This document shows positions 6 to 56,539 of a stretch of 64,000 nt of DNA, piece after piece. The notes under the pieces were generated by a model. It saw only the letters and a list, made by a program, of their open reading frames with translations. It did not search any database and was not told where the DNA came from. This DNA is from Octopus sinensis (taxonomy: Eukaryota): NCBI RefSeq assembly GCF_006345805.1, contig NW_021832226.1, positions 248,001-312,000 on the forward strand, in the 5' to 3' direction. The translations under genes were made by a program, and so were the position numbers. The stretch's first letter is position 1, and the number at the start of each line of letters is the position of its first letter.

Positions 6-926
6 CAGTGGTTCTCAAGAATTTTGAGCCAGGGGCCGCAAAAATCAAATTTTTTATTTATAGGGGGCGCACATTTTTTTGTCAACTTAATGAAGATAAG
101 ATATTTGTTATTTTAGGTTGAACTGAAGAAAATACATATGATTTTTGTTTTACTGTGTACATGCAATTTAGAGTTGCGTCCTATTGCCGCACATTTGTTA
201 TATCAATAAATGAAAGAATTTATAAACTACTTTGTCATATTTTCAAAATCTGGTACGATATTAGATGTTAAAATCCGCAACATCTGATCTAGATGGATAT
301 CCGTTAGTTCATTGCGGTATTATTTCCTAATTTTAGTATTTTAGTATCGTTACTTAGAGGTAACTTGTGTGCAATATCGAAAACAGCGGGCGAACAACAT
401 TCCGATGCAAATATTTCGATTGCCGTTTTATATAATTCGCCATCAGAATAAGGCTTCATATTTTTAGCCAATAGGTAACTAATTTTGTATGATGCCAGGT
501 TAATATTAGACGAATATGTCCCACTTTTGAAAGTGGATGATCGCTTTAAATAATCTTCTTTCATTTGTTTTAGTTTTTTCGTCCTAGGAACACCAGTGAA
601 TTTGTCATAAAGAATAGAGTGGGAACAATAGTGCCGTTCGATTGTATACATTTTTAAAGTTACAATAATAGAATTGCATATTAGGCAAAAAGCCTTTCCA
701 TTGATCTCAATAATGAAATATTTTTCTTCCCAGATGAGTTTAAAAATCCTATTTTCCTTGGAAATTTTTTGAAAACGTTTAGAATTCGACATCACAACAA
801 CAAATAAAAAACGTGACAAAAATAAAATATTTATAGAAACACAAGCCCCTCAATTAAATCCTAGGGGCCGCAAATTAAATCCTAGAGGCCACATGCGGCC
901 CCAGGGGCAGCACTTGAGAATCACTG
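6..926 (-). mobile_element. Non-autonomous hAT (Buster/SPIN/GTF2IRD2-like) element nested in another hAT
   Basis: TIRs cagtggttctcaag (6) and cttgagaatcactg (ends 926). Right flank ttctagac; left flank tagac is cut by the window edge, consistent with an 8-bp TSD. ORF 304-819(-) has the GTF2IRD2-type N-terminus (AFCLIC..ERHY). Confidence 0.85.
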
Positions 927-9056: not shown

Positions 9057-10335
9057 CAGTGTTTTTTAATCTGGGTTCCGCGCAAAATTTTTGGAGTTCC
9101 GTGAACTTCAAAATATTGTGAATAATTTTTCATCATCTGTTTCCATTATTTATAAAACGGAATTGTTTTAAAAACTTGCAAATAGTGCAATGGCTCCAGC
9201 AAAACTTAAACTTCATCTCTCCTCCAAGCATCCTATAATAAATAAATTCTGAACTTTCTAAGACAAAAAAGAATATTTTATAAGAAAATTGGACCAGAAT
9301 AAAGTTCAAGCATCTAATTTTTCTAAAAGATTTAAAATAACCGAAAAAGTACTGCATTCTAGTTATGCTATGGGTGAGATCGGTGCCAAAAAGATGAAAT
9401 CACAGACTCTTGCGGAAACTGTTATTTGTGCCTACATGCAAAAAAGCAGTGAAGATAATGTTTGGAGAAATTCGCTGCCGCTGAGCTCGATTGAAATTTC
9501 AAATACTTCTGTGAGCAGATGGATCAAGGATGTCTCTGATAATATGGAAAGCAGTTTGGTTCGGCGAATAAAAAAATCAGAATTTTTTGCGCTTCAAGTG
9601 GATAAAAACTCAGATATTACAGAAAGAACCCAACTGCATTGATGATGACAATGACAGGGCATGTTAAAGGCTTTGTTTCTGTTGCGAAAAATAAGAATCC
9701 GGACTTAATTTACGCGCATTGTTTACTTCACCGTGAGACATTGGTCGCACAGGCTAATGGGCATGAACTTAAATATTCTTTGGACATGGTCGTAAAAATT
9801 ATCTATCATATCAAAATTAGGCCGTTGAAATTACGACAGTTCTCGAAACTTTGTAAAAATGCAGAACATTCAGTTTTGATTTTCAAGAATGCATACCTTG
9901 CAGATATTTTTAATCAACTCAATGTTCTCAATAGCAGCATGTAAGGAAGAAATAAAAATCTTATTTATTTCAAATGGCAGAACATTAAAAATGGAATATT
10001 TAAAGCGTAATATTGATTCATTGTCAAAAAAAGAATATCCTATTATAGCCAACAAATCTTTAAGTTTAGTTCAATTTTCAACGACCAATCTCTGTGAAAG
10101 TGAATTTTCTGCTTTAACAAATATAAACCATAAAAACTTACTATATGTAGAACAAGACCTGCGTTTATCCTTGTCAAAGATAAGGCAGAGCTATGCAAGA
10201 GACATCAGCTTTAGCCATCTCACTAATTTTTGTCTTAATATAATACTGATAATTGTTAAAATCATATATGGGTTCTGTAGGTCAAATAAAATTTAGTTAG
10301 GGTGCCGCGGTCTCAAAAAAAATTGGGAACTACTA
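9057..10335 (+). mobile_element. Internally deleted hAT (ZBED5/Buster-like) element
   Basis: Left end cagtgttttt at 9057; right end gggaactacta at 10335; flanks atctaaag/atctagag (7/8 TSD); fragments FFALQVD, HCLLHRETL and FSTTNLCESEFS. Confidence 0.8.
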
Positions 10336-11208
10336 ATCTAGAGAGACAGGCGTGGTTCCGTGATCAGATGGCTGATGCTTATTGTTTTGTGTTTGGTGCA
10401 AAATACAGCTTTTTGTTTGAATATTGAGTATGGTTCAGAGCTGTTTCTTATAAAATTAGTCCAGTCTTTCAATTTCTTTAATGCTTTTTCACCAATTGTG
10501 CAAGTTATATAGGAGGACAAAATAAGCGTTTCAAATAGTCTTAAACACTGTTTTACTAAAACGATTTTGTGATGAGTTTCAGGGTCTTTCTTGAATTCCT
10601 CGACGCACCTAAAGGTAGACAACAAGGGACAAATAATCTTTTTCAGAGTGTTATCATTAGTAAATAGCTTTTCAGTCTGTTTTGTGGCTAATCAGCAAAT
10701 TAGTTTCGCTTCAGAAAGAAGTTTCTTTATTTTCAAGCAATCAAAAAGAAGTTAATAGCCTTTTTAGTGTATTCATCACCAATTCTCTATTGATGCAATC
10801 AAATGCCTTGGTAAGGATAATTCCTACGACCTCTGCGTATTTTTGGCATGGAACTGCATATCAGAGACAAATTCATACTAAATCCGAAGCTACTGTGACA
10901 ATGCGGTGAAAATTCTACCTTATCCTGAAAAACATAAAAGCGATCTTGTATTATGTACGAATATATAAAAAATTGTTTTATTACAATCCTCATCTCTAAT
11001 TTATTGGATAAAAAATATCAAATTAAAGAAAACTTATTTAAAATATTGGGACCTCGACGGAAAATTAAAAGCTTTTCGCTATAATCCATAGGGCAACAAG
11101 CTGCTATCCATGAAATATTAGTGCGCTACTATCCACGAATCATGAAAGATCAGGATACAAAACAAGAACTGAATAATCGAAAAATCAAAAAAGTAAAGTG
11201 GCCGTAAA

Positions 11209-19357
<8,149 letters not shown>

Positions 19358-20824: not shown

Positions 20825-21408
20825 ATGGGAAATAAACATTCTAAGTTAATATCAGAAAAATAACAAATTAAGAGCTTTTGGAAATTCTATCTCAAAAAAG
20901 GAATTCGAAGATCTTCGCGAAATCCTTGTATCTAAAAACCCAGATAGAAAAATAACTCTTGAATTATTTACTACCATGTACAAAAATATTTTTCCAGCGG
21001 GGAATCCGACAAAGTTCGCAAATTATGTCTTCAATGCTATTGACAAAAACAAAGATGGAAAAATCGACTTTTCTGAATTTATTATAGCAGTACATATTTT
21101 AAAATCTGCAGATAATGAAATGAAATTAAAATGGATTTATGTACTCTGTGACATCGATTGTGATGGTAATGTTTCAAAAAATGAATTAATAAATATTTTT
21201 CAGGTAGTAACTTATACTGACTTTTTTCAAGGCTATTGACGAAATGATTGGCAATAATTGTGAAAATAAACCAAATAACCATGCTAATAATCTTTTTGTT
21301 AAATGCGATTTGGATAAAAACGGTGTTATATCAGTAGACGAATTTGTTGAAAATGCTAAAAACGATTCTTCCGTTGCTGAACTTCTCAAATTTTGTCCTA
21401 AATTTTAA
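20825..21408 (+). CDS. Neuronal calcium sensor family EF-hand protein, copy 1
   Basis: MGNKHS myristoylation-type start; FPAGNPTKFANYVFNAIDKNKDGKIDFSE; two 28-nt introns. Confidence 0.85.
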
Positions 21409-22014: not shown

Positions 22015-22599
22015 ATGGGAAATCAAAGTTCAAAGTCAAATAAAAAAATCGACGAAGTAATGGATTTAAGTGATTTAATTTCTAAAAGAGAAATAAAAGA
22101 TTTAAGCGAAATCCTTGTTTTTGGCGAACCTGGCAAAAAAATAACCCTTGAGTTGTTTATTTCCATGTACAAGAATATTTTTCCTACAGGAGATCCGACA
22201 AAGTTCGCAAATTATGTTTTTAATGCTATTGACAAAAACAAGGACGGAGCAATCGACTTTTCTGAATTTATAATAGCAGTAAATATTTTACGATCTACAG
22301 AGGATGAAACAAAGTTACAGTGGATTTTCAAACTTTGCGACTTTGATTCCAATGGTGATATATCAAAAAATGAAATAATAAATGTTTTCCAAGTATTAAC
22401 TGAACTGTACTACTTGCAGGCACTTTACGAAATGATTGGAGATGATTGTTGTCTAGATAAAGCAAAGAAGCATGCTAATGATCTTTTTGTTAAATGCGAT
22501 TCGGATAAAAACGATCTTATATCACTAGATGAATTTATGGAAGGTACTAAAAAAGATTGTTCTATTATTGACCTTCTAAAATTTTGTCCTACCACTTAA
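22015..22599 (+). CDS. Neuronal calcium sensor family EF-hand protein, copy 2 (tandem paralogue)
   Basis: MGNQSS start; FPTGDPTKFANYVFNAIDKNKDGAIDFSE; probable in-frame introns of 36 and 27 nt at the same positions as copy 1. Confidence 0.88.
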   Translation: MGNQSSKSNKKIDEVMDLSDLISKREIKDLSEILVFGEPGKKITLELFISMYKNIFPTGDPTKFANYVFNAIDKNKDGAIDFSEFIIAVNILRSTEDETKLQWIFKLCDFDSNGDISKNEIINVFQVLTELYYLQALYEMIGDDCCLDKAKKHANDLFVKCDSDKNDLISLDEFMEGTKKDCSIIDLLKFCPTT

Positions 22600-24818: not shown

Positions 24819-26010
24819 CTAACTAGGTCCAGAGCCTTCAAGGTGAACAGATTATTGCAGTCCACCCACCTCCTTCCATTTTTCCTTCTTTTCTCTGGCA
24901 CTATAGACCTCCGAGGAGGTGCAGTCCAGCCCCTCTCGTTAACTATTTACACTGATCCATCAATCCTAATTCGTTTGCATACCTCCTCCTTTTCTTCCCT
25001 TCCACTATCTTCAAACGATCTAGGTACCTGATGCCAACCTCCACGATAACAGTCTCCTGGTGATTTTATCGTGGATCACAATATTGGGTTTGCTGTGCTG
25101 AAAACAATCGAGGTGCGTATTGGGGTATCCACTGTAATGCACACCTTCAAGATTACGTCCAGTGAGATTACGTACTCGTTCAAGGCGTAAAATAATTTCC
25201 GTCAATTGAAGCGAGTTTTTCATAATATTGCTGCCCTACTACGCACAACTTCCACGACACACTTTCTTGTTTTCAGTTTGATTAATGAGACTGAACTCTT
25301 CACGACAAAAAGATACTTATACCCTTGGTGCTCCTCCAAGAGTTTTACTAGGTCACCACACACAGGGGCGTTAGTCTCCGACTTGTTTTATTTAAGCTTC
25401 AGGCTCACAACTTTCATAAAACTTTTCAAGGCTTTATCTACCGAGTGGAGGATCTCTGAAAACCGAGCGAATAGTTTAATGCCGTCTATAAACATGAGAT
25501 AGTTGGTGCTAGAACACTTTCCATCATGTAAGATCGACATTTGTTCGGATTGGGCAGTGAGGACTCTACTCAGCAGTTCTAGGCAGGGGACAAAAAGCAG
25601 CGGAGACATGCTGTCGCCACGTAATATGCCCTTTTCTAGCTTAACCTCGGCTATATCGCATTTGTTGTAGTCTAGATGCACATTTCTCCTCTCCATCACA
25701 GTTACAACAAATATGATAAACTACAAAGGCAACTTGAGTTCGCTAGCCATAATAAATAAAAATCTGATCTAGTTCTTAATCTTTAATCCAGGGAAGATGC
25801 AAACAACCTTTTTATAGACAAGTACTAATTTATAGAAAACCTGCCTGTTAACATGGTGATAATCTGCAAATTGTTACACATCACAGATTTAAGAATAAGA
25901 ATAAAAAGAATGACACATGGCTTTCTTGATTTATTAAAAACATAAATTGTCACAACATTACTCAATCGTATTGCAATTGTTATAGCATCGGCCTATCTAT
26001 ACACGTGGAT
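24819..26010 (-). mobile_element. Degenerate RLE-type non-LTR retroelement fragments with 3' end
   Basis: GILRGDSMSPLLFV, YLMFIDGIKLF, HSKPNIVIHDK, ANELGLMDQCK; 3' segment shared with 53899-54010; 25770-26010 resembles 61730-61960. Confidence 0.75.
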
Positions 26011-26219: not shown

Positions 26220-27170
26220 GCCTCATGTGGCTCTTTTTCTCTTGGGAAACCATCTTTCCGCCCCTAAGATTTTTTACACGTTAAGATGCGCGCCCTGTTT
26301 TCACAGAGGGGAGCTTCTTTCCGACTTTGACAATATCTTCAGGCTCGGTACAGGCTCACTTTGAAATCTGGCCTTCGACGATCCCGGTTGGATTCAGGCA
26401 TTTTTACCTGTGCGCTGGGGCGGCCTTGGCTTGAGATCCTACTCCAATCTGGCCCTTCCTGCTTTCCTATCCGCATACTCTGCTTCACGTATTCTTTCAG
26501 ACATCGTTCTAAGAAATTATCTGAAGATTACTCTGCGGTTTGTGGCCAGTTGGAAGCTCGGTTTGACTCGAGGCTTTCCGATTTTGCATTTATCCAGCTT
26601 CAGTGGGATAAAATCTCTTTTTAGTCAATATACAAAAACTTAGTTTCTGTCTAATCACTCTCTCACTTGCCGCCGAAGTGCTGGTCGTGACCCTCGTCAT
26701 AGCGAACTTAACGTTATCATACAGAGAGACCTTGCTTCCGCTGATATCCGGTCAATCCTCGAAACAATTGGGCTGGATAGAAAAGACAGCAAACGCATAG
26801 ATGGTCTATTCATATTCCTTATTTTGGATTCTACCCGCTCAGACATATTTTCGCATGAAAATCTCGCTCGGTCCGCTGTCGATCCTGACCACGCGTCAAG
26901 GCAGGGCGAGGATTTCAAGATTCTCAAGTACGACCACTTTTCAAACTTGTTGTTTTTTACCTCAGCTGCTTTAAAGTCCTGCGGCATCTTCGGCCCAAGA
27001 CACTTCGCTTGCTTCGCTCGCGCAGTTGACAGATATCAAGGATCAGACACGACTTAAGAGAGTTCTCTAGGCTCTTGGAACGTCTGTCGATCGCTGTGAT
27101 CTGAGAGAATGGCTTTGCTATTTACGAGGCTGGTCGAGCTTCTCGTGAAGCCTTTAACTAGTTTAACTCC
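26220..27170 (+). mobile_element. CRE-clade retrotransposon 3' fragment, second subfamily
   Basis: RWGGLGLRS..LALPAFLS, KRIDG, LERLSIAVI..EAGRASREAFN; same ending type as the 52336 copy. Confidence 0.8.
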
Positions 27171-33551: not shown

Positions 33552-35602
33552 TAAATTCACGATCACCAAAACCAACTAAACAAAACATTGATAATATTAA
33601 ATAACCGGTTGATAAAAATAATAAATTATTAAAAATATAATATAAAAATTCCTAAACATAAAACAAACGTGGATTAGTATAGACTAATAATTCTTTCGCT
33701 ATCAGAAATATAATCCTTGAATGCGGCGCGTAATTATGATTACAAGCTTTGAAATTCTAAAAAACAATGAAATAAAAATCGATTCACCAATTCGTGTAAT
33801 GAATTATGAAGAGTACATAAAATTTATGCAATGTATTACCTAATTTTAATATGTAATAAATAAATGATAAGAACGTTTTTGAGCCACTTAATGTATATAG
33901 AGACTAAATAAGTGCAATCAAACCGTAACTGAAGAAATGTTTGCAAGATCACGAAGAATTAATTTAAGTAGGCCTCACGCGAATCGGCAATTAATTAAAA
34001 GACTGAACGTACATTATACGAATCTTCAAAGACACCGGTATTAATTGTTCCCTTTGTTGTGCCGCTATAGTTACATAGGCAGTTGTTGATATAAATAATT
34101 TCCACGGTATTTTTTTGAGTAAATAATTCAGAAAAAATTGAAACAAGTATTTTAAAGAAAATTAAATACAAGACGAAATTAGTTAAGATAAATCGAAAAG
34201 TGCCAAACTCAAGAAATATTATGGCAATAAATGGTCATTAAAGGTGATTCATCAATTTTATGTTCGGCTTTTCTTTGAATTACACTTGATGCTAATGGCC
34301 CAGCGAGACTCAGTTGCTATCACAGTATAATAGTGCTATGTTAATTATTCTAAATGATATCACAGACAAGTATTCATAAATCAGATCGATTTGATGTCAA
34401 TATAAAAGCTGAATTCCTACTAATAGAAAATGAATGTAGATCCGATACCTCCATAAAGTTTAATACATTAATGATTTTATTCATCATAATTGATTATATA
34501 TTTTTTATACAATTATTGTATTTTAAAATAACTATATTAAACGTGAATAAGTTTCAATATTGTTTTTTCCATTTGATTTATTTCTAACGAATTGTAAAGA
34601 ATCAATGAAAATTGAGCTTTTGAAAACATTTTTATAATGAAAGCCATTGACAACTTAATTAAACTACAAGAAAATGTACTAATGCAAATATAGATTAACT
34701 GTTTTTATCTAAACAAAATTACTATTTTTTTAATATGAGGTTTAATTCATACAAAAGTGATAAAAGATTAATCGAAGGGAAGGCCAGCAGTCTGGCGGAT
34801 AGCCAAACTGTTCCCCCGGATAACGGCGATCGAGAACCGCTGAAAAAGCCAATTACTATTTTATACAAATTTCTAAAATAACTTTTTTCATATTTTTTTA
34901 CTGAATTTTCCGAATATTATGAAGTTTAATGTTTTTATCACCTACTTATTGACCTCAAGTTTGTATAGAAAAGATTATCTGAATACATAATCTATAATGA
35001 ATTATTATTAATAATCAATACACATTATTAGGTGTTGAACTACCTCTTTTTTGCGGTCACGTTACACGTATTACTCAAGCCTAAAATACAATGAAAGACT
35101 ATTTAATGAAAAATAATTTGGAAGACTGTGATCTTTCGAGGTTGGTGCAATAATCTGAAAACACTAAAGATTCCTTTAAACTGTGAAGTATTGCATCTGT
35201 CAGATTTATAAAAAAATTAAACTTGACAGAATTTCAAATTTTGAATGACTCAATTGTGTATTCAGAATGAAACTATAACATGATTATATCATCAAATTTT
35301 ATAGATAAAATACGATTTTATCGAGTTTAAGGGTGTATTAAGTAATATTCTATGCGTTAAAAATAATCAAGTAAGATTGATATGATTAAAACTCAATAAA
35401 TTCGACGCTTTACTATTTTAGAACGAGTAAAGTTAATTGTATAAAGATGAAATTTGAATTTTTATTATTAATCAGGCCAAGAAATGCTTTTATAAATTCG
35501 TGATTTATGGTTTTTCTTTATAATGTAGCAAGTATTTAAGGTAATAAGAAATTCCGAACAATGAGGAATTTCGAATGACATAAGGTAAGATGGTTGTGAG
35601 AT

Positions 35603-38600
35603 GATTCGTCGTCCAGTAGTAACCCCGTACTAGGAGTGGGGAGAGCTTTGAGCCAGTCACCCGTGTGCGGGTGACAGGCGCAGTTAAGGGTGGCCAGCTG
35701 GAGTTGGTCCGACTTGGAGCGAAGTTTTCGTAATGTGTTCGAGCAGAGAATTTCGTCCAGCCCCTTTGAACTGAAGGGATCGTGGGAAAATCAAGGTCGA
35801 GTGAGCACCACGTACGGCATGCAGATGAGAATTCCGAGAGCTCATTAAGTTCGAGAGAGGGAAGTAGAACTGAGCAAACGGAATTCCTGGAAGCCGACAT
35901 GGATGAGAGATAGCAGGGTAGGGCCAGGTCCGCACAAGAGCGGATCCCGATCCCCCCGAAGCGAGTTGGTAAACTGGCACGGGTAAAACCGTCACCAGTG
36001 AACCTCAAATTGAGGTGGAATGTTAGCGATTGGTGGACAAGATTATCGATTCTGGATAATGAGTCTGTGGCAGCGAAACACGGGGAGGAACGGAGAATGT
36101 AGGTCAGTCTGGGGACGAAAAGAAAGTTCTTTAACAAGAAAAACGCAAGATGCGAGCCAAGCCCACGGATCCGATCAGTGAGTAGTTTAATTTCGTCCCA
36201 TTTAGACGATAAGGCATTTTCTATGCCTTCAGCGGAAATTGGAGAGCCCAAGATAACTAGATCGCTGGTGGGCGTTAGCCTTAACCCAACGATCAGGCTG
36301 CTGAGAGCGGAGAATGTGTTGCGGAGAGCGGCGGGGGCAAGAGAAATGTTTACGAGTTCGCATTTTTCGCCGTTAAGAGATAGTCCGATCTTGGAGAAAC
36401 CGGAACCGATCGTCACGTCGTCCAGGTACCAGAAGTTAACAGTGGAAGAAAGGTTCCGTGCAATGTGGTCAACGGAGAGGGCAAACAGCAATGGGCCCAG
36501 TGGGTCACCCTGCTGAATGCCGCATTCTGACATGATGATCTGATCATGGATCAGAAGGCAGCTTGGGGCAGAGTATGCCAGCTTTACAATTGGGAAGAGA
36601 ACGGGGCAACGTGCCGAGACCACTTCGAGCAGATGGTCCCGGCGGACGCAGTTGAATGCGTTGCTGACGTCCAGCTTCACGATGAACTTGCAGTCTTCTG
36701 GCTTTGACTGGACAAGTTGGCGAGTGCCGTGCGCGAGAATTTCGCAGGCACCTTGGACGCCGACACCGTACTGGAAAGGGAGAAACTCCAGACTCAGGGG
36801 GGGAACCACCCTGCGGGACATTATCTTGGCCGAGAGTCTCCTGAAAACGTTACCGACCGCAATGGGCCTCACGCCACCATCGGCTTTCGACAGGGCAATG
36901 AGGCCAGCAGAGAAAAGAAGATCTCTGGCGACGGTTGGAATCTCGCCCGAGACAATGTGCGAACAAAGACGAGTGACAGAAGATAGCAGGTCTTTTCCGG
37001 ATTCGTGGGTCAATGGGCTCAGGAGATCGCGTAGGTGGATATCCCGCCGCTGCTACTGGGCGCAAAAGACCCGAGAGCGGCCGAAACCTCAGACGAGGTT
37101 ATCGGGTTGGACGGAGCCGAAACTAAAGTCGGTGTTGCACGGAGGTCGGTGGGAGCTTGGGGGTGTTTGCTGCGGAGTTGATTCAGGACAGCATCACACC
37201 GAGGAGCCACAGAGGAGTTGGATGAAATTGCGCGCACTGCTCCAGAGATATCGCCCTGGAGGAGTTTGCTTCGGACTGCCCGGGAAAAGCGCAATTCTGC
37301 GAGACCGGGCCGTTTTGAGGGTGCCTCCTTACAAGGGGGCGTAAGAGAGACAGACAGCCAATCAGAGTTGAACTCTGAGTGGACGTAAGATGTACAACGG
37401 TCCTTAATCCGCTGGGCAGAAGAAACGTGATTAGCAGCACATGGGCGCATGGGAGAAGAATTGAGGCAAAGGGAAAGAAAGAGAACAGCTTGAACCAAGG
37501 GTCAGGAGCGCTGGAAGCCAGCGCCTGGTCGATCAAGGCTGCGAGGGACTTGGCCACAGTGGGTCTGGCCGATTTTGGAATCCTTACTGGGATGAATGAT
37601 TCGCTTCGGAAAGCAGATAAGGATTTGAGGAATTGAGAAGGGGTAAAATGGCTCCCGGGAATTGGGGATATGCGTTTGGGTAGACCAAGGCAACTCGGGC
37701 ACTTCCAGCATTGGATAACGGCCGAGCTGGCCCTAGAGAGCCCGACGCAGGATAGGTGGAAGTACAGATCGCAAGAGGAGCACAAGCGGCCCTTCTTGCG
37801 GGAATTGGGTGATTTACAAGAGGAACAAGTTGCCATGTAAAGAATGATGCAATAAAGCGAAAGGAAAAGGAACGATTAATAGAATCAACAACCAACCAAC
37901 AACAACCCCAACAACCCAACCCTTTAAAACTTCGCTCCAAGTCGGACCAACTCCAGCTGGCCACCCTTAACTGCGCCTGTCAGCCGCACACGGGTGACTG
38001 GCTCAAAGCTCTCCCCACTCCTAGTACGGGGTTACTACTGGACGACGAATCCTTGCGGATTGGGATCAGCTTACGATTGGGTTTGGACATTTGCCAGCCC
38101 CACCCTTGCCGGTGCGGGTCCTCAATTTCGTCAAACGGCTTGCACGCCTTGTCGTGTAAGAAGAGTGCCGGAGAATTCCCCGTCACACTCATCTGAATGA
38201 CGTTATGAGGAGGGCTCTAGAGTCGGCTGGTTTCCCTTCCACCCTAGAGCCAGTCGGCCTTTCCCGGAGCGACGGCAAGCGTCCCGACGGGATGACGACC
38301 TTTCCTTTTAGGGAAGGCAAGTCCCTGGTTTGGGATGCCACGTGTGTCGACTCTTTTTCGGCGACAATGCTTCCCAGGACTGTCGCAAACCCGGGTTCCG
38401 CCAGTGCGCTGGCTGAAGAGACAAAGAGGACGAAATACCGGTGTATTTCGAACGCTTTTGAGTTTGCCCCCCTCGCCTTCGAAACCTCTGGAATCGTCGG
38501 AAGGCTGCGACTCAACTCCTCACCGCCATTGGTAGAAAAATCTCCACAAAAACAAACGACCGGAGGGAGACGAGCTGGCTGTTCCAGCGAATCTCGGTTG

Positions 38601-38730
38601 CTGTGCTCCGCGGAAACTGCCACTCAATACGCAGCGCGGCATCGTTGAGCTGACCCTCAGGCTCTCGACAATTCCCTTAGCCACCCAATTGCTTTAAATT
38701 CTTTGTTGTGTTTTTCGTTAAAAAAAAAAA
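35603..38730. mobile_element. Near full-length CRE-clade retrotransposon with inverted 5' arm (35603-37925, minus) and sense 3' arm (37926-38730, plus)
   Basis: PHD-like finger and RT (GIQQGDPLGP, YLDD) on minus; RLE (KRPDG, WDATC), 3'UTR and polyA on plus; TSD aagatggttgtgag at 35587-35600 and 38731-38744; several frameshifts. Confidence 0.92.
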
Positions 38731-38829
38731 AAGATGGTTGTGAGTTGGTTTCAAACTGTATTCAGTGAATATTATTCAAAGTAATATTTAGGACCTAAAG
38801 CTTGGAAAATTATAAAAATATATAAAATA

Positions 38830-38902
38830 TTTTTTGTGCGGCCCGCGAAGCTAATCTTAATTATCGATTTGGCCCTTGAGCTAAAAAGGTTGAGAACCCC
38901 TG
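38830..38902. mobile_element. Isolated hAT right end
   Basis: gcggcccgcg and tttggccc subterminal motifs, then TIR ggttgagaacccctg. Confidence 0.6.
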
Positions 38903-39249
38903 ATTGTATAAGTCACCTCAATATTAAGATTTAAATAAACTGAGAATATATTTACATAATGAAATACGAAAGTAAATAAACTAACTACGACTAAAGAACC
39001 TAAGAGTCAGCTCTTTGACGCCGCGCGGCGTATGAAATGGCAGTTTTCGCGGAGATTTAAATTATCATTTTTTAATATCGATTAATTAATCGTGACAAGA
39101 TTCTGACATTTTTATAACTCCAAGGTTACAGATTTTTTAATCAGACGACAGAAATAGATGTAAAATATTTCGAAATATATTTTTACTTTAAAATCAAAAA
39201 ATTATGGTGCGGACAAGTGCAGTGTCCTCAAAGTCTGTAAAAGGACGAG

Positions 39250-39785
39250 GGGTTACACTAATTACGTCCCTAGATTATTGCTGAACGGGTCAACAATTGA
39301 TGCAGTTGATCGGATGACTTATTTTGGGGTGCTCTTCAAGCCGTCCGGTAAGTTTGATAATCATATTGCACGTACAAAAATGCGTTCAATGCAGCGTCTA
39401 GGCGCGTTGAGTGCTTTCCGGCTGCGGAGAGGTGCCTGGCTACGCGTATTTAACGCCATGGTGTTACCCGTGTTGACCTATGGCGTATATGCCCGGCACT
39501 TCTGCAAGGACAGGGAGAAGTACGTTGACCCGCTCAAAAAAATCAGAAAACGAGCCATCCGGCTAGCCCATGGCTTAGGATGTCGAGAGGAGCTCTCGGA
39601 CACCCAGGAATTGTCCCTCAAAGGCGTCCCTGAGGTCCTAGAGAAGATAATGTCTGGGTGGCAGGTAAGGCAGTAAGTTATAGTTTGCGGCTGAGAGGTG
39701 AGCGTGTGTGCGGGACTGAAAAGGCAGGAATGCCGAAGGTCCTTATCTATCCTTCACTAACAGCCTCTTTTTAAATAAATAAAAA
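39250..39785 (+). mobile_element. LINE 3' fragment (RT thumb region, 3'UTR, A-rich tail)
   Basis: MTYFGVLF..WLRVFNAMVLPVLTYG; ends taaataaataaaaa. Confidence 0.65.
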
Positions 39786-43096: not shown

Positions 43097-44439
43097 AGTG
43101 GTTTGTCTAATCAAGGTCACTAAGCTAAATCTCCGGACTATAAAGGCTCTTAAGCATTATCTTAATTGGCTGTTAAAAAAATTAGACAGGTTGTTGCCGT
43201 GGCGGCAGAGATTTTTTTTGTTTATACTATTTTACAAATTTTTAAAGTTTTTTGTTGTTTTTTTTATTTTTTTGTTTTTAAATTATTTATTTTTATTTGT
43301 TTTTTTTATTTTTTTGTTATTTTCTAAAAATTCAACCGGATTGAATTTTTAAACTCCTTAGATCTCTCTGGAATGCCGAATCATCTTTTAAAGTTAAAGA
43401 TAGGCGTTCCAGTGGTTTTATTACGAAATCTTGCGCCACCTAAATTATGCAACGGAACGAGGTTAGTTATCAAAAATTTGATGGCCAACGTAATAGAGGC
43501 GACGATATTAACAGGTAAGTATAGAGGTGAGGATGTTTATATTCCACGAATTCCGATAATTTCTGATGAATTACCATTTAGATTTAAAAGGCTGCAATTT
43601 CCTTTGAGGATGAGTTTTGCAATGACAATAAACAAGGCCCAGGGACAGTCATTAAAGGTAGTTGGGTTATTTTTAGAGAGTGAGTGCTTTTCACATGGAC
43701 AGCTGTATGTGGGATGCTCGAGGGTAGGCAGAAGAGAAAATTTATTCATATATGCCAAGGAAGGACGGACGACAAACATCGTTTATCAACAGGCGATAGA
43801 ATAGGGTTACATTAAACCAGGTAGTTTTATACATCTACATAAACTTATAGTTGTTTGATGAAACAGGCCCTCCGCAGGAGCTAGGTCGCGGTGAGCGAAG
43901 CGAGCTGCCGAGCTAGTTTAAAATATTTCTTGACGATTGAAAACGATGGTCGACCAGACCCGACTTTTTTGTCCGTCGAGGACTTATTTAAATAGCTTCT
44001 GATAATTTGCGATATTGTGCCAAGCAATCTTTTAGCGATATCTTGTATTTCTGCATGCCAATTATTCTGCATTTTTCTTCTTATCAAAAAAACTAAAAAA
44101 ATGTAAAATACTTTAATCTATGTTAAGAATAAATTTGAGACACATTTGCAATATTGTCCCATTGTAAATTTATAAGAAAAAGCATGTTCAGTTTTTTATG
44201 TCCCGAAGCACTTAATGAATATTATGTTTTTAAAATGAACGTCTGCAGGAAATTAAGGAAAAAATGTAATATTGGAGGGAAAATTAGCGATTACTTTTTT
44301 TAATTTATGATCAACTTAAAAGTCCTACACAAGACTCTCTTTAGCAGCCGGGATAACACGCCGTCATCAACGTGGCTGAAATATGGGAATAACTCTCCCC
44401 GATCAGAAGGGTTGTTCTCATATTTGGAGGACAAAAACC

Positions 44440-48716: not shown

Positions 48717-51134
<2,418 letters not shown>

Positions 51135-51845: not shown

Positions 51846-52290
51846 TTATTATTTTATTATTTAAAGACCAAACACGGGCAAAGCCAGTTAATTATAGTTA
51901 TTCCCGTGATCGCCGATCCAAACGAGGGAGATCCTTCTGAAAGGTTCAATCCTTCCCGCAAGATCGGCCTGAGACGACGATGTCCCAGGGTCTGAGAAGC
52001 TAAGAGTCCTTTTTCGGTAGGCATTAAGTGCCTCCTGAGCGTTGCCATATCCGGAGGAATTTCCAACTGACATGGTGGACCCCGTAACGCCACGCTAAGC
52101 CCGGAAGGTAAGAGATCCCCATTTCCAACTGTGTCGTGCCAGAAGTGCTCGTTGCCTCACGGGCAGGGGAACGATAACGAGAATTTGCCCCAGGATGAAA
52201 ACTGGCCTCCTTCGGAATCGAACTCACGACCGTCTAAATCCATTATCCATAGCTTAGTCTTCAGCCAACGGGACCGTGACGGAGGACGTT
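51846..52290 (-). mobile_element. Putative tRNA-derived SINE-like element
   Basis: 13-bp TSD tgtgaaaagatca (51833-51845 and 52291-52303); head with GGTCGTGAGTTCGATTCC B-box; (TAA/A)-rich tail; inserted in a CRE 3'UTR. Confidence 0.7.
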
Positions 52291-52303
52291 TGTGAAAAGA
52301 TCA

Positions 52304-52950
52304 AAAGAGAACATAAAAGTAAAAAGATAACTAAGCTAATTAATGGCCTCACGAGACACCCGGCCAGCCTCGCGAATGGCGAAGCCGTTCCCTCGGATCA
52401 CAGCAATCGACAGACGTTCCAGGAGCCAAGAATACTCTCTTGGATCGTGGCTTGTCCTTGAAATCCGTCGACCGAGCGAGCGAAGCGGAGTGTCTTGGGG
52501 CCGAAGATCCCGGAGGACTTCACGGCGATTGGAGTAAAGAACAGCGAGTTGGAGAGGTGGCCGTACTAGAGAATCTTTCGGTCCTCGGCCTGCCTCGAAA
52601 CGTGCCCAGGATTGGCGGCGGACAAAGCGAGATTTCCCAGCAAGAACGTGTCCGAACAGGTAGAATCCCAAATAAGGGATTTCCCTTGCTCGTATGGGAA
52701 GGTGGACATGCAGTCTGGGCGTTTGCCATCCCCTCTATTCAGTCCAACAGGTTCGAGGATTGACGGGACGCCAGCTGAAGCGAGGGCTCTCTGTATGAAC
52801 GAGTTGAGTTCACTGTGACGGAGGGCACGACCGGAACTCCCACGGCAAGCGAGGGGGTGCAAACCGTACTCGTCAACAGTTCCCCCACAGCGGCATTTGT
52901 GCGTCTGGCAGATTTTCAGCCCGACACGGAGGGAGATTGCGATTCTTAGG
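52304..52950 (-). mobile_element. CRE-clade 3' fragment
   Basis: CRCGG..HPLACR..RH, LEPVGLNRGDGKRPD, WDSTCSDT, LERLSIAVIRGN. Confidence 0.85.
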
Positions 52951-53756
52951 CATTTAGATTATGTGAAATTTAAAAATTAATTAACATTAAATTAATTCAC
53001 CACGAGAAATTTTTTAAGACAATTTTCGAAAACCAATTAGTCCCATTTAGATATTCTTTTACTAAGATGTAGTGTATCATCCGAATTAATGACAGTGTAG
53101 TATTGAGACGGAGGATATTGTTTTCTCAAATATATGAGATATATAACACATCCAGTTAATCCTGACAATCCAAAAGTCATTACGAATTTATTCTAATATA
53201 GTATTCATTATTCTACAGGCCGTGTGTACAATTCAAAATTGAATGTTCTGAAAAATTTAGTAGAATTGGTAGTTTTAAGACCAGGATCTCTTATCTCAAA
53301 AAATTGCTTAATAAATGATTGAATCCTACCGAATACACCCATCACACATAAAATTACCCTACAAAAATATTTATATAATTAAATATTAAAATTAATAATT
53401 TTTCATCATTTTTAACTCGCCATCGCCTCATGCCCTCAGATATATGAGATCAAGTAGTAGAGTTAGGGTTAGGGTTAGTAGATATTATTGACGATCAAAG
53501 TCAAGTTTTGTTTTTGACATCAGAATATTACTAAAATAAGATTCACACATTTAAGACACTAAAAACAAATCTCATCGCGCAGAAAGTGATCAATATTAAA
53601 AAACGACAATCATAATAATCCAAGTGAAAAGTTATGCTAAGTAATAATAATTGGGGTTAGCATGAAAAGAGACACTTCGTGCCTTGTTTTTATCTTCCCG
53701 TTAATGATCTCCCCGAAAACAATTCTATTACATTATTCTATTCTATTACATTTTTC

Positions 53757-53898: not shown

Positions 53899-54010
53899 CT
53901 AACTAAGTCCAGAGCCTTCGAAGTGAGCAGAAGATGGCACTCCACGCACCTCCTCCCCTTCTTCCTCCTCTTCTCTGGCACTGTAGACCTTCGAGAAGGT
54001 GCAGTCCAGC
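53899..54010 (-). mobile_element. Solo 3' terminus of the RLE retroelement seen at 24819-24930
   Basis: Aligns with 24819-24930 (gtccagagccttc..ctctggcactRtagacctYcgagRaggtgcagtccagc). Confidence 0.75.
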
Positions 54011-54087
54011 GCGCAAAATAATTGTGTTAATGAATTCGTTATTGTCGACGTAGCCAGCTTAAATATGGGGTTTCTGACAGAACAGTG

Positions 54088-54947
54088 ATGTTTTTAGTTT
54101 CTATATGTCTTTTATATCAACTTGTATTATATCAACTCGTATTTTTTAATAATAGAAAATTTTTACCGCAAAAAGACATGATTCCATTCACAATATTGTG
54201 CCATTCTCAGATCACGGCCTACCGGTAATTTAATAATCATAATACATTAGGTCCCACAAATTTATGAAAGATCTACAACATTGAGTAATACTTAGTTCTT
54301 TATTGTATGTTAAGAAATCCCTACTACAAAAACAACTTTAGCTACTCAGAAATTCAAAAGTACAATCACAACTCCAGGTGAAACAGTATTCAATACATTT
54401 TAGATACTTCTGCAACTAAAGCAACTTCAGGTAACTTAAAATACGATACATTCTAGATACAAGTACAACTATAACCACTTTAGGTAATTTACCAATCAAT
54501 ATAATATAGATACTACCAGTAATAGGAAGCCTGTAATAAGTAATACACTGAACAATTAATACACTTTAGAAAAAATTTCTTTAAAAAAGAATCTTAATCG
54601 TATTAATTTTCATCTGTTAATATTTTTATATAGAAAAAACATTACTCAAAAGTCCTAAAGGTAACTAAATTTCATTCAATTGTTTTAGAAACCAAAATAG
54701 CTTATAAAAAAAGTTTACCCCAAATATAAATTTTGTTAAAGATAATGAATTAAAGACCGATCATACCCACATAGTTGTCGCAGTTCTCGTAGTTCTAAGC
54801 GTATGTATTATTGCTCTAATTCTTTCTGTATTTATGGTAAAGAAAAAAAAATATTTTCAAGCAAAACCAAATCATGAATATTCTCAGTACCTATACTCTA
54901 TTAAAATTAGGTCTATGTCTCGTGATGTGATAATTACCGGATACTAA
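54088..54947 (+). CDS. Micro-exon gene encoding a 182-aa mucin-like type I membrane protein
   Basis: Exons 54088-54123, 54156-54224, 54251-54284, 54315-54377, 54404-54430, 54457-54483, 54510-54539, 54570-54599, 54634-54660, 54689-54712, 54742-54886, 54911-54947. All 11 introns are GT-AG, 24-34 nt, and splice to one open 549-nt frame: hydrophobic N-terminus, Thr/Ser stalk, Lys-rich linker, TM IVVAVLVVLSVCIIALILSVFMV, then KKKK. Confidence 0.8.
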
Positions 54948-55099
54948 TTAATTCTTTAGGTTAATTAACACTAATATTAACACTTATTTCTTGGAAATTT
55001 AATTTGCTATTCAGGAAATACATCGAGTCAGTCACAATTAGAATAACCTTTAAGAGTAGGGATAAATCAAATGGCTTCAAATTGTACTAGAAGTCATTG

Positions 55100-55880: not shown

Positions 55881-56513
55881 AAAAATACCAGCAGTGAGAT
55901 TCGAACTCACGCACGTTTCCGTAATAGCACCCTTAAGCTACGACAAAGTTCGGAAAAATCATTATGCTCATCGAAGTTATGTTACCCATATTTGAAAAAA
56001 TACCAGCAGTGAGATTCGAACTCACGCACGTTTCCGTAATAGCACCCTTAAGCTACGACAAAGTTCGGAAAAATCATTATGCTCATCGAAGTTATGTTAC
56101 CCATATTTGAAAAAATACCAGCAGTGAGATTCGAACTCACGCACGTTTCCGTAATAGCACCCTTAAGCTACGACAAAGTTCGGAAAAATCATTATGCTCA
56201 TCGAAGTTATGTTACCCATATTTGAAAAAATACCAGCAGTGAGATTCGAACTCACGCACGTTCCGTAATAGCACCTTAAGCTACGACAAAGTTCGGAAAA
56301 ATCATTATGCTCATCGAAGTTATGTTACCCATATTTGAAAAAATACCAGCAGTGAGATTCGAACTCACGCACGTTTCCGTAATAGCACCCTTAAGCTACG
56401 ACAAAGTTCGGAAAAATCATTATGCTCATCGAAGTTATGTTACCCATATTTGAAAAAATACCAGCAGTGGGATTCGAACCCACGCACGTTTCCGTAATAG
56501 CACCTTAAGCTAC
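55828..56513. repeat. Tandem array of six 113-115-bp chimeric units (retroelement fragment plus tRNA-Leu 3' part on minus)
   Basis: Units start at 55828, 55942, 56057, 56172, 56285 and 56400. Confidence 0.95.
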
Positions 56514-56539
56514 CGCCTTAACCGCTCGGCCATGCTGGC
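56459..56539 (-). tRNA. tRNA-Leu(AAG)
   Basis: GCCAGCA/TGCTGGT acceptor; D arm GCCGAGCGGTTAAGGC; anticodon arm GTAGC-TTAAGGT-GCTAT; long variable arm; GTGGGTTCGAATCCCAC T arm; T6 terminator directly after. Confidence 0.95.

Follow-up and report, generated by a model that had tools for sequence, protein, structure and literature searches.

According to the Patthy rule of exon duplication and exon shuffling, phase 1-1 exons that were duplicated in tandem make up extracellular repeat or stalk proteins. The neuronal microexons of vertebrates and insects (3 to 27 nt) are single regulated cassettes with long flanking introns and dedicated enhancer factors. Genomes with tiny introns splice by intron definition, and their usual splicing error is intron retention and not exon skipping. 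The introns of cephalopods are kilobases long.

Among animals, introns shorter than 30 nt were reported for dicyemids and myxobolids alone (PMC13644364). These ultra-short introns are of the GT-AG type and about 22 to 30 nt long; just GTA is left of their 5′ signal, and their 3′ signal is weak (PMC13644364; PMC6736024). The dicyemid D. japonicum came from the renal sacs of Octopus sinensis (PMC6736024). Arrays with exons as short as the introns are not described in PMC13644364 or PMC6736024, and a full-text search of the literature found nothing joining micro-exons with dicyemids. Tiny symmetric exons, preceded by a longer 5′ part for a hydrophobic leader and followed by a 3′ exon that is also longer, are typical of the micro-exon genes (MEGs) of schistosomes (PMC4350168; bioRxiv 10.1101/2023.06.21.545858).

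Here we analyze a candidate gene on the plus strand at positions 54088 to 54947 of a 64,000-nt stretch of DNA (the window; VCDQ01004506.1:248001-312000), which was deposited as part of the Octopus sinensis assembly. The tiny introns of the candidate are ordinary for this genome, and its tiny exons are the unusual part. We consider it likely that the locus is genuine, a protein-coding gene of a dicyemid mesozoan that has escaped annotation, and that it is expressed and was assembled in the way proposed in the Discussion.

Results

The PRP8 gene of the window (positions 19357 to 11209, minus strand) can be modelled with 37 GT-AG introns, 34 of which are 24 to 34 nt long. Joining of its exons yields a protein of 2358 amino acids (aa), whose alignment with human PRP8 (3jcr_A residues 25 to 2335; 4429 bits) runs from end to end, and the exon junctions are seamless in the stretch of the human alignment that was inspected. 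Although introns of up to 60 nt were permitted, none of those used exceeded 47 nt. Across 11 conserved gene models, including NAD kinase-like, PRP8, NCS-like, GILT, ARMC3-like, Axin and PKG-like genes, 80 introns had a median length of 28 nt (range, 23 to 35 nt; search up to 45 nt). None of the 69 internal exons of the conserved genes was 36 nt or shorter, the minimum being 58 nt.

All conserved genes in the 64 kb combine such introns with compact spacing. Furthermore, a RefSeq model merges two unrelated genes 7 kb apart, as expected when a gene finder made for long introns meets a tiny-intron genome. We conclude that the window is almost certainly a scaffold of a dicyemid parasite, with Octopus sinensis as the host. 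The initial annotation had suggested a diversification system "in this lineage"; with introns all about 28 nt long, this lineage has to be read as dicyemid and not as octopus. A myxobolid origin was considered but set aside: the assembly is that of an octopus, dicyemids are renal parasites of octopuses, and the GC content of approximately 34% is nearer to that of D. japonicum (36.7%) than to that of Henneguya (29%). A literature search found no report of dicyemid scaffolds within the O. sinensis assembly.

At 54088 to 54947, removal of ten GT-AG introns (26 to 34 nt) leaves one open frame of 190 aa (Table 1). The model was obtained as a spliced open reading frame (ORF) by dynamic programming (DP), which also chose the ATG of exon 1. 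Ten introns are thus accommodated in 860 nt, and the spliced coding sequence (CDS) measures 573 nt. A fully open spliced frame had been noticed in the initial annotation, and our product contains every peptide quoted there. However, the 11 introns and 182 aa given at that time have to be revised to ten required introns and 190 aa. The 11th intron is optional: its removal deletes YLYSIKIR and gives the 182-aa product, but the frame is open without it. The sizes of exons 5 to 10, the phase-1 introns around them, and the ATAC at the start of exons 5 to 7, each following a 26-nt intron, were the same in our model. It is also true that conventional ORF tracks miss the locus, since it holds no ORF of at least 60 aa, and the plus strand contains just two ORFs, of 47 aa and 37 aa.

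Table 1. Positions of the candidate gene's exons, introns and other features in the window, with intron scores under the PRP8-trained model
Feature	Position	Strand	Length (nt)	Phase	Score	Remarks
Exon 1	54088-54123	+	36			ATG; codes for MFLVSICLLYQL, N-terminal hydrophobic segment, putative signal peptide
15-nt tandem duplication (family D7)	54112-54141	+	2 × 15			TTATATCAACTYGTA × 2; straddles exon 1/intron 1 boundary
Intron 1	54124-54155	+	32	0	1.0	GT-AG; retention leads to stop at aa 57
Exon 2	54156-54224	+	69
Intron 2	54225-54250	+	26	0	7.8	GTAA..TTAG; highest score of the gene
Exon 3	54251-54284	+	34
Intron 3	54285-54314	+	30	1	0.4
Exon 4	54315-54377	+	63	1-1		Symmetric; codes for Thr-rich repeats IPTTKTTLATQKFKSTITTP
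Exon+intron tandem array	54351-54569	+				Three 53-nt units at 54351, 54404 and 54457; fourth (60 nt) at 54510-54569
Intron 4	54378-54403	+	26	1	3.5
Exon 5	54404-54430	+	27			Symmetric; codes for DTSATKATS
Intron 5	54431-54456	+	26	1	6.2
Exon 6	54457-54483	+	27			Symmetric; codes for DTSTTITTL
Intron 6	54484-54509	+	26	1	4.8
Exon 7	54510-54539	+	30			Symmetric; codes for DTTSNRKPVI
Intron 7	54540-54569	+	30	1	-1.5	Weakest score
Exon 8	54570-54599	+	30			Symmetric; Lys-rich
Intron 8	54600-54633	+	34	1	-0.4
Exon 9	54634-54660	+	27			Symmetric
Intron 9	54661-54688	+	28	1	4.8
Exon 10	54689-54712	+	24			Symmetric
Intron 10	54713-54741	+	29	1	-0.7
Exon 11	54742-54947	+	206			Juxtamembrane segment, predicted transmembrane (TM) helix, KKKK stop-transfer, 31-aa tail, TAA stop
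Predicted TM helix	54771-54839	+				IVVAVLVVLSVCIIALILSVFMV, residues 133-155; followed by KKKK
Optional GT-AG segment (11th intron of the initial annotation)	54887-54910	+	24		2.7	In frame, stop-free
PKG gene, near the candidate	48717-51134

Retention of any single one of the ten introns introduced a premature stop into the candidate frame. In the spliced RNA, the used frame contains no internal stop, and the other two frames contain 17 and 15. Under strict rules, six open paths exist at the locus, and introns 1 to 10 are identical in all six. Exons of 36 nt or shorter make up 235 of the 573 nt of the CDS (41%); the six symmetric micro-exons account for 165 nt (29%), or for 40% together with the 63-nt exon 4. 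As had been proposed, exons can be skipped in frame, since each single skip of exons 4 to 10 leaves the frame open, but the number of symmetric exons is seven and not six. Dropping all seven together also left the frame open, with no stop at the junction.

The candidate introns and those of the window's conserved genes agree in length, base composition and splice motifs. Their median length is 28.5 nt (range, 26 to 34 nt). Compared to the exons, they are poor in C (11% versus 19%) and rich in T (41% versus 30%), and in PRP8 the corresponding values are 9% versus 19% and 44% versus 29%. Eight of the ten start with GTA, six of these with GTAA. Under the PRP8-trained model, they scored from -1.5 to 7.8, and four of them at most 0.4 bits; for real PRP8 introns, scored by leave-one-out, the median was 5.1, the lower quartile 2.0 and the minimum -7.7. 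The splice signals of this genome are poor in information, with 6% of all GT..AG pairs at a score of 0 or above. The near-equal size of exons and introns had been presented as a challenge to models of exon and intron definition; given the median of 28 nt in the conserved genes, only the exons are odd.

Spliced ORFs were then scored with introns limited to 24 to 34 nt and a score threshold learned from the PRP8 introns. The longest spliced ORF in 54000 to 55000 was exactly the candidate model. None of 400 dinucleotide shuffles attained 190 aa under strict rules (median, 42 aa; maximum, 152 aa), and none of 200 did so under looser rules. In 111 real intergenic tiles, the longest spliced ORF was 129 aa, with at most three introns used. 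The locus contains seven intron-like segments separated by gaps of a multiple of three nucleotides, versus a maximum of three in the rest of the window (both strands) and of six in 1000 shuffles. The minus strand of the same DNA gave a spliced ORF of just 25 aa. All other spliced ORFs of at least 150 aa in the window overlap a conserved-looking gene, a transposable-element ORF or a GC-rich-repeat ORF; three of them were compared with Pfam.

The codon log-odds of the candidate were +0.115 per codon in frame and -0.75 and -0.68 out of frame. The in-frame value compares with 0.09 to 0.24 in conserved genes, and it lies within the upper tail of stop-free intergenic spliced ORFs (mean, 0.028; SD, 0.06; maximum, 0.132). 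If any GT..AG segment of 18 to 60 nt was permitted, millions of open paths existed at the locus. A minimum-intron DP with any GT..AG of 20 to 40 nt returned a different open path with a zero-length exon, which was dropped. Since such loose rules find other open paths, openness alone is no evidence, and the model was therefore limited to genome-typical introns. The chance argument rests on this restriction.

The suggestion that exons 5 to 7 reflect tandem duplication of exon plus intron was supported statistically by direct alignment. Units 1 to 3 align without gaps, with an identity of 55 to 68% versus 30% in shuffles (P ≤ 0.0002). Despite a divergence of 32 to 45%, they retain the GT, the AG, the exact length of 53 nt and the open frame. 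The fourth unit contains a 7-nt insertion, and its splice sites are offset from those of the other units. The 53-nt units were too diverged for Tandem Repeats Finder to detect. Further similarities link exon 4 to exons 5 and 6 (family D1) and intron 2 to intron 6, which are 71% identical including their flanks (family D2). With the exception of intron 2, introns 1 to 3 and 8 to 10 and exons 8 to 10 did not clearly resemble the 53-nt unit when the units were aligned. The first copy of TTATATCAACTYGTA provides the 5′ splice site in use, and a repeat fragment is located 78 nt upstream of the ATG. Judged from these alignments, a 53-nt exon+intron unit was probably duplicated in tandem and the micro-exon array enlarged in this way. 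As duplicates, three or four of the candidate introns do not count as independent coincidences.

Hydropathy analysis of the predicted product revealed an N-terminal segment with a Kyte-Doolittle 11-residue mean of 2.0 to 2.15; the run is just 11 residues long and has no obvious small-residue cleavage site. Residues 43 to 96 consist of repeats of 9 to 10 residues with 48% Ser+Thr and little Pro. The predicted TM helix (19-residue mean, 3.31) and the KKKK are followed by the 31-aa tail, which closes the product. This agrees with the type I membrane layout proposed in the initial annotation. Its term "mucin-like" suits the Ser+Thr content but is a loose label for a Pro-poor stretch. The only Pfam match was to DUF3377, across the TM helix region; at 23.2 bits (cut-off, 26.5) it was below threshold and was taken as a hydrophobic-segment match instead of homology. 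In addition, two further intron-like segments in exon 11 would remove the TM helix in frame. The idea of a secreted isoform was dropped because these segments score -0.5 with 3.2 or -0.5 with -1.1 and the middle piece is in another frame, and the segments were judged to occur by chance. Based on its predicted features, the product is most likely a type I membrane protein that is specific to the lineage and whose ectodomain is rich in Thr, Ser and Lys.

No homologue of the 190-aa protein was found at an E value of ≤10 among 5.8 billion proteins, and the last exon had no match among 1.84 billion representative proteins. A search for paralogues by tblastn and blastn within the window found none. 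Exact look-ups of a PRP8 exon, a helicase ORF, the NCS gene and the last-exon ORF returned no database record. The neighboring NCS gene matched just the mislabelled RefSeq protein, suggesting that the databases are without dicyemid data. If so, the missing homologues say little about expression. At the locus, Rfam gave a chance-level match (E = 0.36); across the whole window, it identified one tRNA. The candidate sequence is of low complexity.

Discussion

We propose that the ten ultra-short introns are removed constitutively and one by one, by intron definition, and that the resulting mRNA would be translated into a lineage-specific single-pass type I membrane protein of approximately 190 aa. 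A short hydrophobic signal at the N terminus would be followed by a Thr/Ser-rich stalk, which is probably O-glycosylated, and by a Lys-rich stretch; stalk and Lys-rich stretch would form the ectodomain, anchored by one TM helix with KKKK and a 31-aa cytoplasmic tail. The micro-exon array may be a by-product of ectodomain growth, in which a 27-nt phase 1-1 exon and a 26-nt intron were copied in tandem as one unit. Given an exon length divisible by three and an intron absent from the mRNA, gain or loss of units would stay in frame. If the protein varies, we infer that the number of units in the DNA is a more likely source of the differences than splicing.

Alternatively, the locus could be a decaying 53-nt minisatellite in AT-rich noncoding DNA combined with a chance hydrophobic stretch of 68 codons, or a pseudogene or spliced noncoding RNA. 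In the minisatellite version, a locus adjoining repeat fragments would present GT..AG pairs at intron-like spacing by chance. Such an explanation would account for the failure to find homologues, paralogues or an annotation-derived protein, and for the repeat fragment shortly upstream of the ATG. It also draws on the low-information splice signals, the millions of open paths under loose rules, the repeat units that inflate the apparent coincidences, and a codon score not beyond the stop-free null. Nevertheless, we regard it as unlikely. None of the 600 shuffles and none of the 111 intergenic tiles came near 190 aa, and the minus strand yields hardly any spliced ORF. Moreover, introns 1 to 3 and 8 to 10 and exons 8 to 10, although mostly unlike the repeat, still fit in length, phase and openness, and the diverged units have held their splice sites, length and frame. 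The base contrast between exons and introns parallels that of PRP8, and the order of hydrophobic N terminus, TM helix and KKKK is a coherent protein design.

According to a second alternative, the symmetric phase-1 exons 4 to 10 are skipped in many combinations, and surface-protein variants are produced as in MEGs. All seven have a length of a multiple of three and lie between phase-1 introns, and the single skips and the joint skip are open. The parasite lives surrounded by host fluid, secretion or membrane anchoring is described for MEG products (PMC4350168), and a link between dicyemids and Platyhelminthes has been reported (PMC6736024). However, skipping would require composite introns of 79 to 119 nt, far from the 23 to 35 nt of the 80 conserved-gene introns (search up to 45 nt), and PRP8 is joined without any intron above 47 nt although 60 nt was permitted. 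Furthermore, tandem duplication of a single unit fully explains the symmetry and the common phase, which counts against combinatorial skipping, and no sequence similarity to any MEG or other protein was found. We therefore consider this alternative improbable. It is similarly doubtful that the dicyemid varies a surface glycoprotein facing the octopus urine, be it by combinatorial skipping of the seven exons or by rapid gain and loss of 53-nt units.

That the label of the contig, deposited and RefSeq annotated as O. sinensis, is correct and that the candidate belongs to a cephalopod pocket of tiny-intron genes is extremely improbable in view of the kilobase-long introns of cephalopods, the 23- to 35-nt introns and compact spacing of the conserved genes, the fused RefSeq model, the dicyemids in the renal sacs of this host (PMC6736024), and the restriction of such introns to dicyemids and myxobolids among animals (PMC13644364).

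If transcripts confirm the preferred model of a constitutively spliced dicyemid gene, its six consecutive 24- to 30-nt exons between introns of the same size would be among the tightest exon-intron lattices in an animal gene known to us. For a genome that defines its introns at about 28 nt, such a lattice bears on how short the distance between the two splice sites of an exon can be, and neighboring introns may need to be removed one after another. It would also extend a MEG-type architecture beyond flatworms, at least as convergence, and the locus is a clear illustration of how a protein can grow in frame when an exon+intron unit is duplicated. If the diversification reading were true instead, a spliceosome tuned to introns of approximately 28 nt would handle exons too short for two spliceosomes at once, an ordered or recursive splicing pathway would be forced, and the system would be a counterpart of flatworm MEGs, independent or anciently shared. 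Since gene finders and ORF logic miss genes of this type, dicyemids (5,012 genes predicted) may have more lineage-specific surface proteins than have been counted. Finally, a 674-kb Octopus sinensis contig with RefSeq gene models appears to belong to a kidney parasite, which concerns users of the annotation.

Among the described systems, the schistosome MEGs were the one named in the initial annotation. Indeed, exons 4 to 10 of the candidate (63, 27, 27, 30, 30, 27 and 24 nt) are symmetric and, as in MEGs, are flanked by longer parts, of which the 5′ one codes for a hydrophobic leader and the 3′ one is a single exon. Both kinds of gene belong to parasites, have products without similarity outside the lineage, and are missed by standard gene finders. 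The putative signal segment and the predicted TM helix of the candidate would be compatible with a secreted or membrane-anchored product as in MEGs. The candidate nevertheless differs from MEGs in homology, intron length and coding share, and we do not assign it to them. MEGs are reported as restricted to platyhelminths, and the candidate has no sequence similarity to them. Their introns measure 0.1 to 5 kb, in contrast to 26 to 34 nt, and their micro-exons constitute most of the coding region, in contrast to 29% (six exons) to 41% (exons of ≤36 nt). While variation by exon skipping was demonstrated for schistosome MEGs, for the candidate it is a hypothesis.

The ultra-short introns of dicyemids provide the closer match. 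The candidate introns share with them the GT-AG ends, the length, the GTA start and the T-rich and C-poor composition, and their removal restores the frame. The exons of 24 to 30 nt, on the other hand, contrast with the mean exon size of 198 nt in D. japonicum (PMC13644364; PMC6736024). Like neuronal microexons, the candidate's exons of ≤30 nt keep the frame, but seven symmetric exons follow one another, with introns of equal size between them. Compared to stalk proteins that obey the Patthy rule, the candidate has no domain recognizable by Pfam, and its unit measures just 53 nt in total; unlike a classical PTS mucin domain, its repeats of 9 to 10 residues are poor in proline. As in those stalk proteins, each symmetric phase-1 exon corresponds to one short repeat of the predicted ectodomain, growth probably occurred by unequal duplication of the exon+intron unit, and a Thr/Ser-rich stalk would stand above a single TM helix, an arrangement also seen in mucin-like membrane proteins.

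A ten-intron gene model at 54088-54947

The candidate micro-exon gene was rebuilt by hand. On the plus strand, from an ATG at 54088 to a TAA at 54945-54947, removal of ten GT-AG segments leaves eleven exons and a single open frame for a product of 190 aa, MFLVSICLLYQLKIFTAKRHDSIHNIVPFSDHGLPVPQIYERSTTLKIPTTKTTLATQKFKSTITTPDTSATKATSDTSTTITTLDTTSNRKPVIKKISLKKNLNQKTLLKSPKETKIAYKKNNELKTDHTHIVVAVLVVLSVCIIALILSVFMVKKKKYFQAKPNHEYSQYLYSIKIRSMSRDVIITGY. Introns 1 and 2 are in phase 0, while introns 3 to 10 are in phase 1 throughout. Exons 5 to 7 each start with ATAC after a 26-nt intron, as stated in the initial annotation, and its claim that no ORF is visible here also held: the ORF list contains only a 47-aa and a 37-aa ORF on this strand. 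That annotation was correct in all details except the number of introns and the length of the product (11 and 182 aa). Ten introns suffice, and the extra segment (54887-54910; 24 nt) is not demanded as an intron by the sequence, since it is in frame and stop-free.

The last exon contains two more intron-like segments, 54774-54799 and 54837-54861 (or 54828-54861). Their joint removal would restore the frame and drop the transmembrane helix, so that 165-173 aa remain; this variant probably reflects chance. Upstream, a 110-nt GC-rich repeat fragment ends 78 nt before the ATG, and its 84.5% identical copy lies just downstream of a GILT-domain gene. The fragment could be a promoter source or merely neighboring debris. 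A GC-rich 0.5-kb piece further upstream has an inverted copy (73% identity).

The spliced frame exceeds chance expectation

Openness by itself is no evidence, because loose rules already yield other open paths through the locus: one more if any GT..AG segment of 20-40 nt is allowed, and millions at 18-60 nt. Therefore, a small intron model was trained on introns of PRP8, a conserved gene of the window. For PRP8, a shortest-path search joined ORF fragments via 37 GT-AG introns (34 have lengths of 24-34 nt) into 2358 aa. The spliced protein aligns over its entire length with human PRP8 (3jcr_A residues 25-2335; 4429 bits), and the junctions are seamless within the displayed portion of the alignment. 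One 30-nt PRP8 intron (minus strand, approximately 18990-19020) contains no stop, keeps the frame, and can be read through as 10 residues; only the alignment with human PRP8 reveals it. Thus, stop-free introns with lengths divisible by three exist here, and ORF-based models over-read them.

The intron model used 34 PRP8 introns and comprised splice-site positions, interior composition, and length. Leave-one-out scoring of the true PRP8 introns gave 5.1 bits as the median, with the lower quartile at 2.0 and the lowest score at -7.7. For the candidate, introns 1 to 10 scored 1.0, 7.8, 0.4, 3.5, 6.2, 4.8, -1.5, -0.4, 4.8, and -0.7, which is inside the PRP8 range, though somewhat low. Under strict rules (introns of 24-34 nt; score of at least -1.5), the longest spliced ORF in 54000-55000 was exactly the 190-aa model, and the opposite strand gave 25 aa. 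Dinucleotide shuffles stayed below this length: 400 of them under strict rules had a median of 42 aa and peaked at 152 aa, and 200 under looser rules peaked at 173 aa. The 111 real intergenic tiles gave at most 129 aa, with at most three introns. All other spliced ORFs of at least 150 aa in the window, of which three were checked against Pfam, overlap either a gene that looks conserved or an ORF of a transposable element or of the GC-rich repeat at 35.5-38.2 kb. Only six open paths through the locus exist under the strict rules, and the first ten introns are common to all six.

A frame-blind statistic, the chain of intron-like segments separated by gaps of at most 40 nt and a multiple of 3, agreed with these tests. 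A chain of seven was found only at the candidate, with a runner-up of three in 128 kb (both strands) and a maximum of six in 1,000 shuffles. Furthermore, the spliced RNA has no internal stop in the used frame but 17 and 15 in the remaining frames, retention of any of the introns creates a premature stop, and the introns are C-poor and T-rich compared to the exons, as in PRP8. The codon log-odds (+0.115 per codon; conserved genes, 0.09-0.24) are weak evidence, because stop-free intergenic ORFs (mean, 0.028) reach 0.132. Together, the tests show a statistically robust gene model of this genome's normal intron type. We consider it likely that the locus is a constitutively spliced coding gene; that it is not a coding gene appears unlikely.

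The array grew by duplication of exon+intron units

The tandem duplication of exon plus intron suggested in the initial annotation was borne out. Three 53-nt units (exon 4 end+intron 4, exon 5+intron 5, and exon 6+intron 6) align without gaps at 55-68% pairwise identity, versus 30% in shuffles (P ≤ 0.0002), and they retain GT, AG, exact length, and open frame. Elsewhere in the window, neighboring 53-mers attain 60% identity only at the 99.9th percentile. In the fourth unit (exon 7+intron 7; 60 nt), an insertion of 7 nt shifts the splice sites relative to the other units. Intron 2 is similar to intron 6. The encoded repeats are Thr-rich, with 9-10 residues per unit (DTSATKATS, DTSTTITTL, and DTTSNRKPVI). 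Duplication of such a unit is automatically in frame, because splicing removes the intron and the exon length is divisible by three. It therefore accounts for the shared phase (eight consecutive phase-1 introns versus 16% phase 1 in the window's conserved genes), the symmetry, and the initial ATAC of exons 5 to 7, with no need for selection for skipping. These results show that the array grew through unit duplication.

Combinatorial skipping of the symmetric micro-exons as a variation system, as read in the initial annotation, is arithmetically possible, since exons 4 to 10 can be dropped singly or all seven together without creating a stop. However, skipping requires composite introns of 79-119 nt, and PRP8 needed none above 47 nt although 60 nt was permitted. 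The published mean intron length of Dicyema japonicum, 38 nt (PMC6736024), implies that some longer introns do exist. On balance, we regard such a system as very unlikely. Under constitutive splicing, the ten introns would be removed through intron definition, yielding a single main product of 190 aa at the parasite surface. Short exons impose steric limits on splicing. With exons of only 24-30 nt, two spliceosomes could probably not engage neighboring introns simultaneously, and sequential removal is expected. If the protein varies, a change of unit number at the DNA level would be the more natural route.

The window is most likely a dicyemid scaffold in the octopus assembly

The window is AT-rich (approximately 33% GC) and contains animal genes. 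Besides PRP8, the spliced-ORF finder gave NAD-kinase-like, two NCS-like EF-hand, GILT-domain, ARMC3-like (Arm/HEAT repeats and EDR1 domain), Axin (RGS and DIX), and cGMP-dependent-kinase-like models. Introns in the conserved-gene models (n = 80) have a median of 28 nt (range, 23-35 nt), and internal exons (n = 69) a median of 158 nt (minimum, 58 nt). Among animals, introns below 30 nt are known only from the dicyemid D. japonicum and myxobolid myxozoans (PMC13644364). Dicyemids inhabit octopus renal sacs, and the sequenced D. japonicum specimens came from O. sinensis (PMC6736024). With its tiny introns and compact gene spacing as signature, the window looks like a dicyemid parasite scaffold inside the host assembly; the literature searched contained no mention of such a scaffold in the O. 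sinensis assembly. Set against these introns, a true octopus gene, as the deposition label would have it, is extremely improbable.

One NCS-like paralogue begins with an exon of 20 nt and contains two introns (28 and 25 nt). Its intronless counterpart, a product of intron loss or retrocopying, gave one match with 100% identity, XP_029655018.1 ("neuronal calcium sensor 1-like [Octopus sinensis]"). This RefSeq model fuses the NCS-like gene at 22015-22599 to an ARMC3-like exon 7 kb away and is apparently a modeling error due to the tiny introns, which fits a dicyemid scaffold. The nearest conserved-looking neighbor of the candidate, the kinase-like model, contains 12 introns (25-34 nt) and lacks any ORF of at least 120 aa, and is thus also invisible to the ORF track. 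The helicase-like and hAT-like ORFs look like transposon remnants, which fits the high repeat content reported for D. japonicum (49%).

Features of the candidate gene and the surrounding window
Feature	Position	Strand	Remarks
Candidate introns 1-10	within 54088-54947	+	GT-AG; 32, 26, 30, 26, 26, 26, 30, 34, 28, 29 nt
Candidate exons 1-11	within 54088-54947	+	36, 69, 34, 63, 27, 27, 30, 30, 27, 24, 206 nt
GC-rich repeat fragment	53901-54010		copy at 24821-24930
GC-rich 0.5-kb piece	51991-52960 / 26656-27165		inverted copies
PRP8	19357-11209	-	
NCS-like EF-hand paralogues, tandem	20825-21408, 22015-22599	+	both N-termini MGN..
XP_029655018.1	22015-29567	+	256 aa over 7.5 kb
Contig of XP_029655018.1 and window	VCDQ01004506.1:248001-312000 of GCA_006345805.1		contig of 674,425 bp; deposited and RefSeq-annotated as Octopus sinensis
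Non-LTR reverse-transcriptase element	35500-39700		GC up to 53%, a striking contrast in a 33% GC genome
126-nt inverted repeats of this element	35603-35728, 37926-38051		99% identical
691-aa spliced model	48717-51134	-	C-terminal half protein-kinase-like; by eye cGMP-dependent protein kinase
tRNA-Leu (AAG)	56459-56539	-	81 nt; sole Rfam/ARAGORN match in window
Helitron/Pif1-like helicase C-terminus	43373-43804	+	by eye
hAT-like ORF	304-819	-	by eye
hAT-like ORF	9530-10512	+	by eye

Predicted protein and comparison with known systems

Hydropathy analysis revealed an N-terminal hydrophobic run (11 residues; mean, 2.0-2.15) and, at residues 133-155, a very strong hydrophobic helix (mean over 19 residues, 3.31). 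KKKK and a tail of 31 residues follow the helix. The predicted layout fits a type I membrane protein that carries an extended stalk. Ser and Thr make up 48% of residues 43-96, and Lys and Arg 33% of residues 89-128. The stalk is probably O-glycosylated. The type I membrane layout proposed in the initial annotation is plausible; "mucin-like" is a loose label, because the stalk is proline-poor.

The full protein had no match at E ≤ 10 among 5.8 billion proteins, the last exon had none among 1.84 billion representatives, and Pfam gave only a subthreshold match in the transmembrane region. No RNA family was found at the locus, and no paralogue in the window. The empty database searches show a locus without any annotated protein. 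They say little on expression, because the databases seem to hold no dicyemid data beyond mislabeled RefSeq models.

Schistosome micro-exon genes (MEGs) have introns of 0.1-5 kb and are defined by a coding region mostly of very small symmetric exons, a signal peptide with a secreted or membrane-anchored product, skipping variants, and restriction to platyhelminths (PMC4350168; bioRxiv 10.1101/2023.06.21.545858). The candidate shares the symmetric micro-exons, and its predicted membrane layout is plausible. In contrast, only 29-41% of its coding sequence is in micro-exons rather than most of it, its introns are outside the MEG length range, and it has no homology to MEGs. It is therefore MEG-like in architecture, yet outside the MEG family. 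The initial observation is confirmed, and its interpretation is supported in part.

In a dicyemid genome, the candidate's tiny introns are ordinary and its tiny exons are not: within the dicyemid tiny-intron class, it is a normal member by introns and deviates by exon sizes. No paper was retrieved by a full-text literature search combining "micro-exon" and "dicyem". What is new here is a micro-exon architecture upon a tiny-intron background, in a dicyemid.
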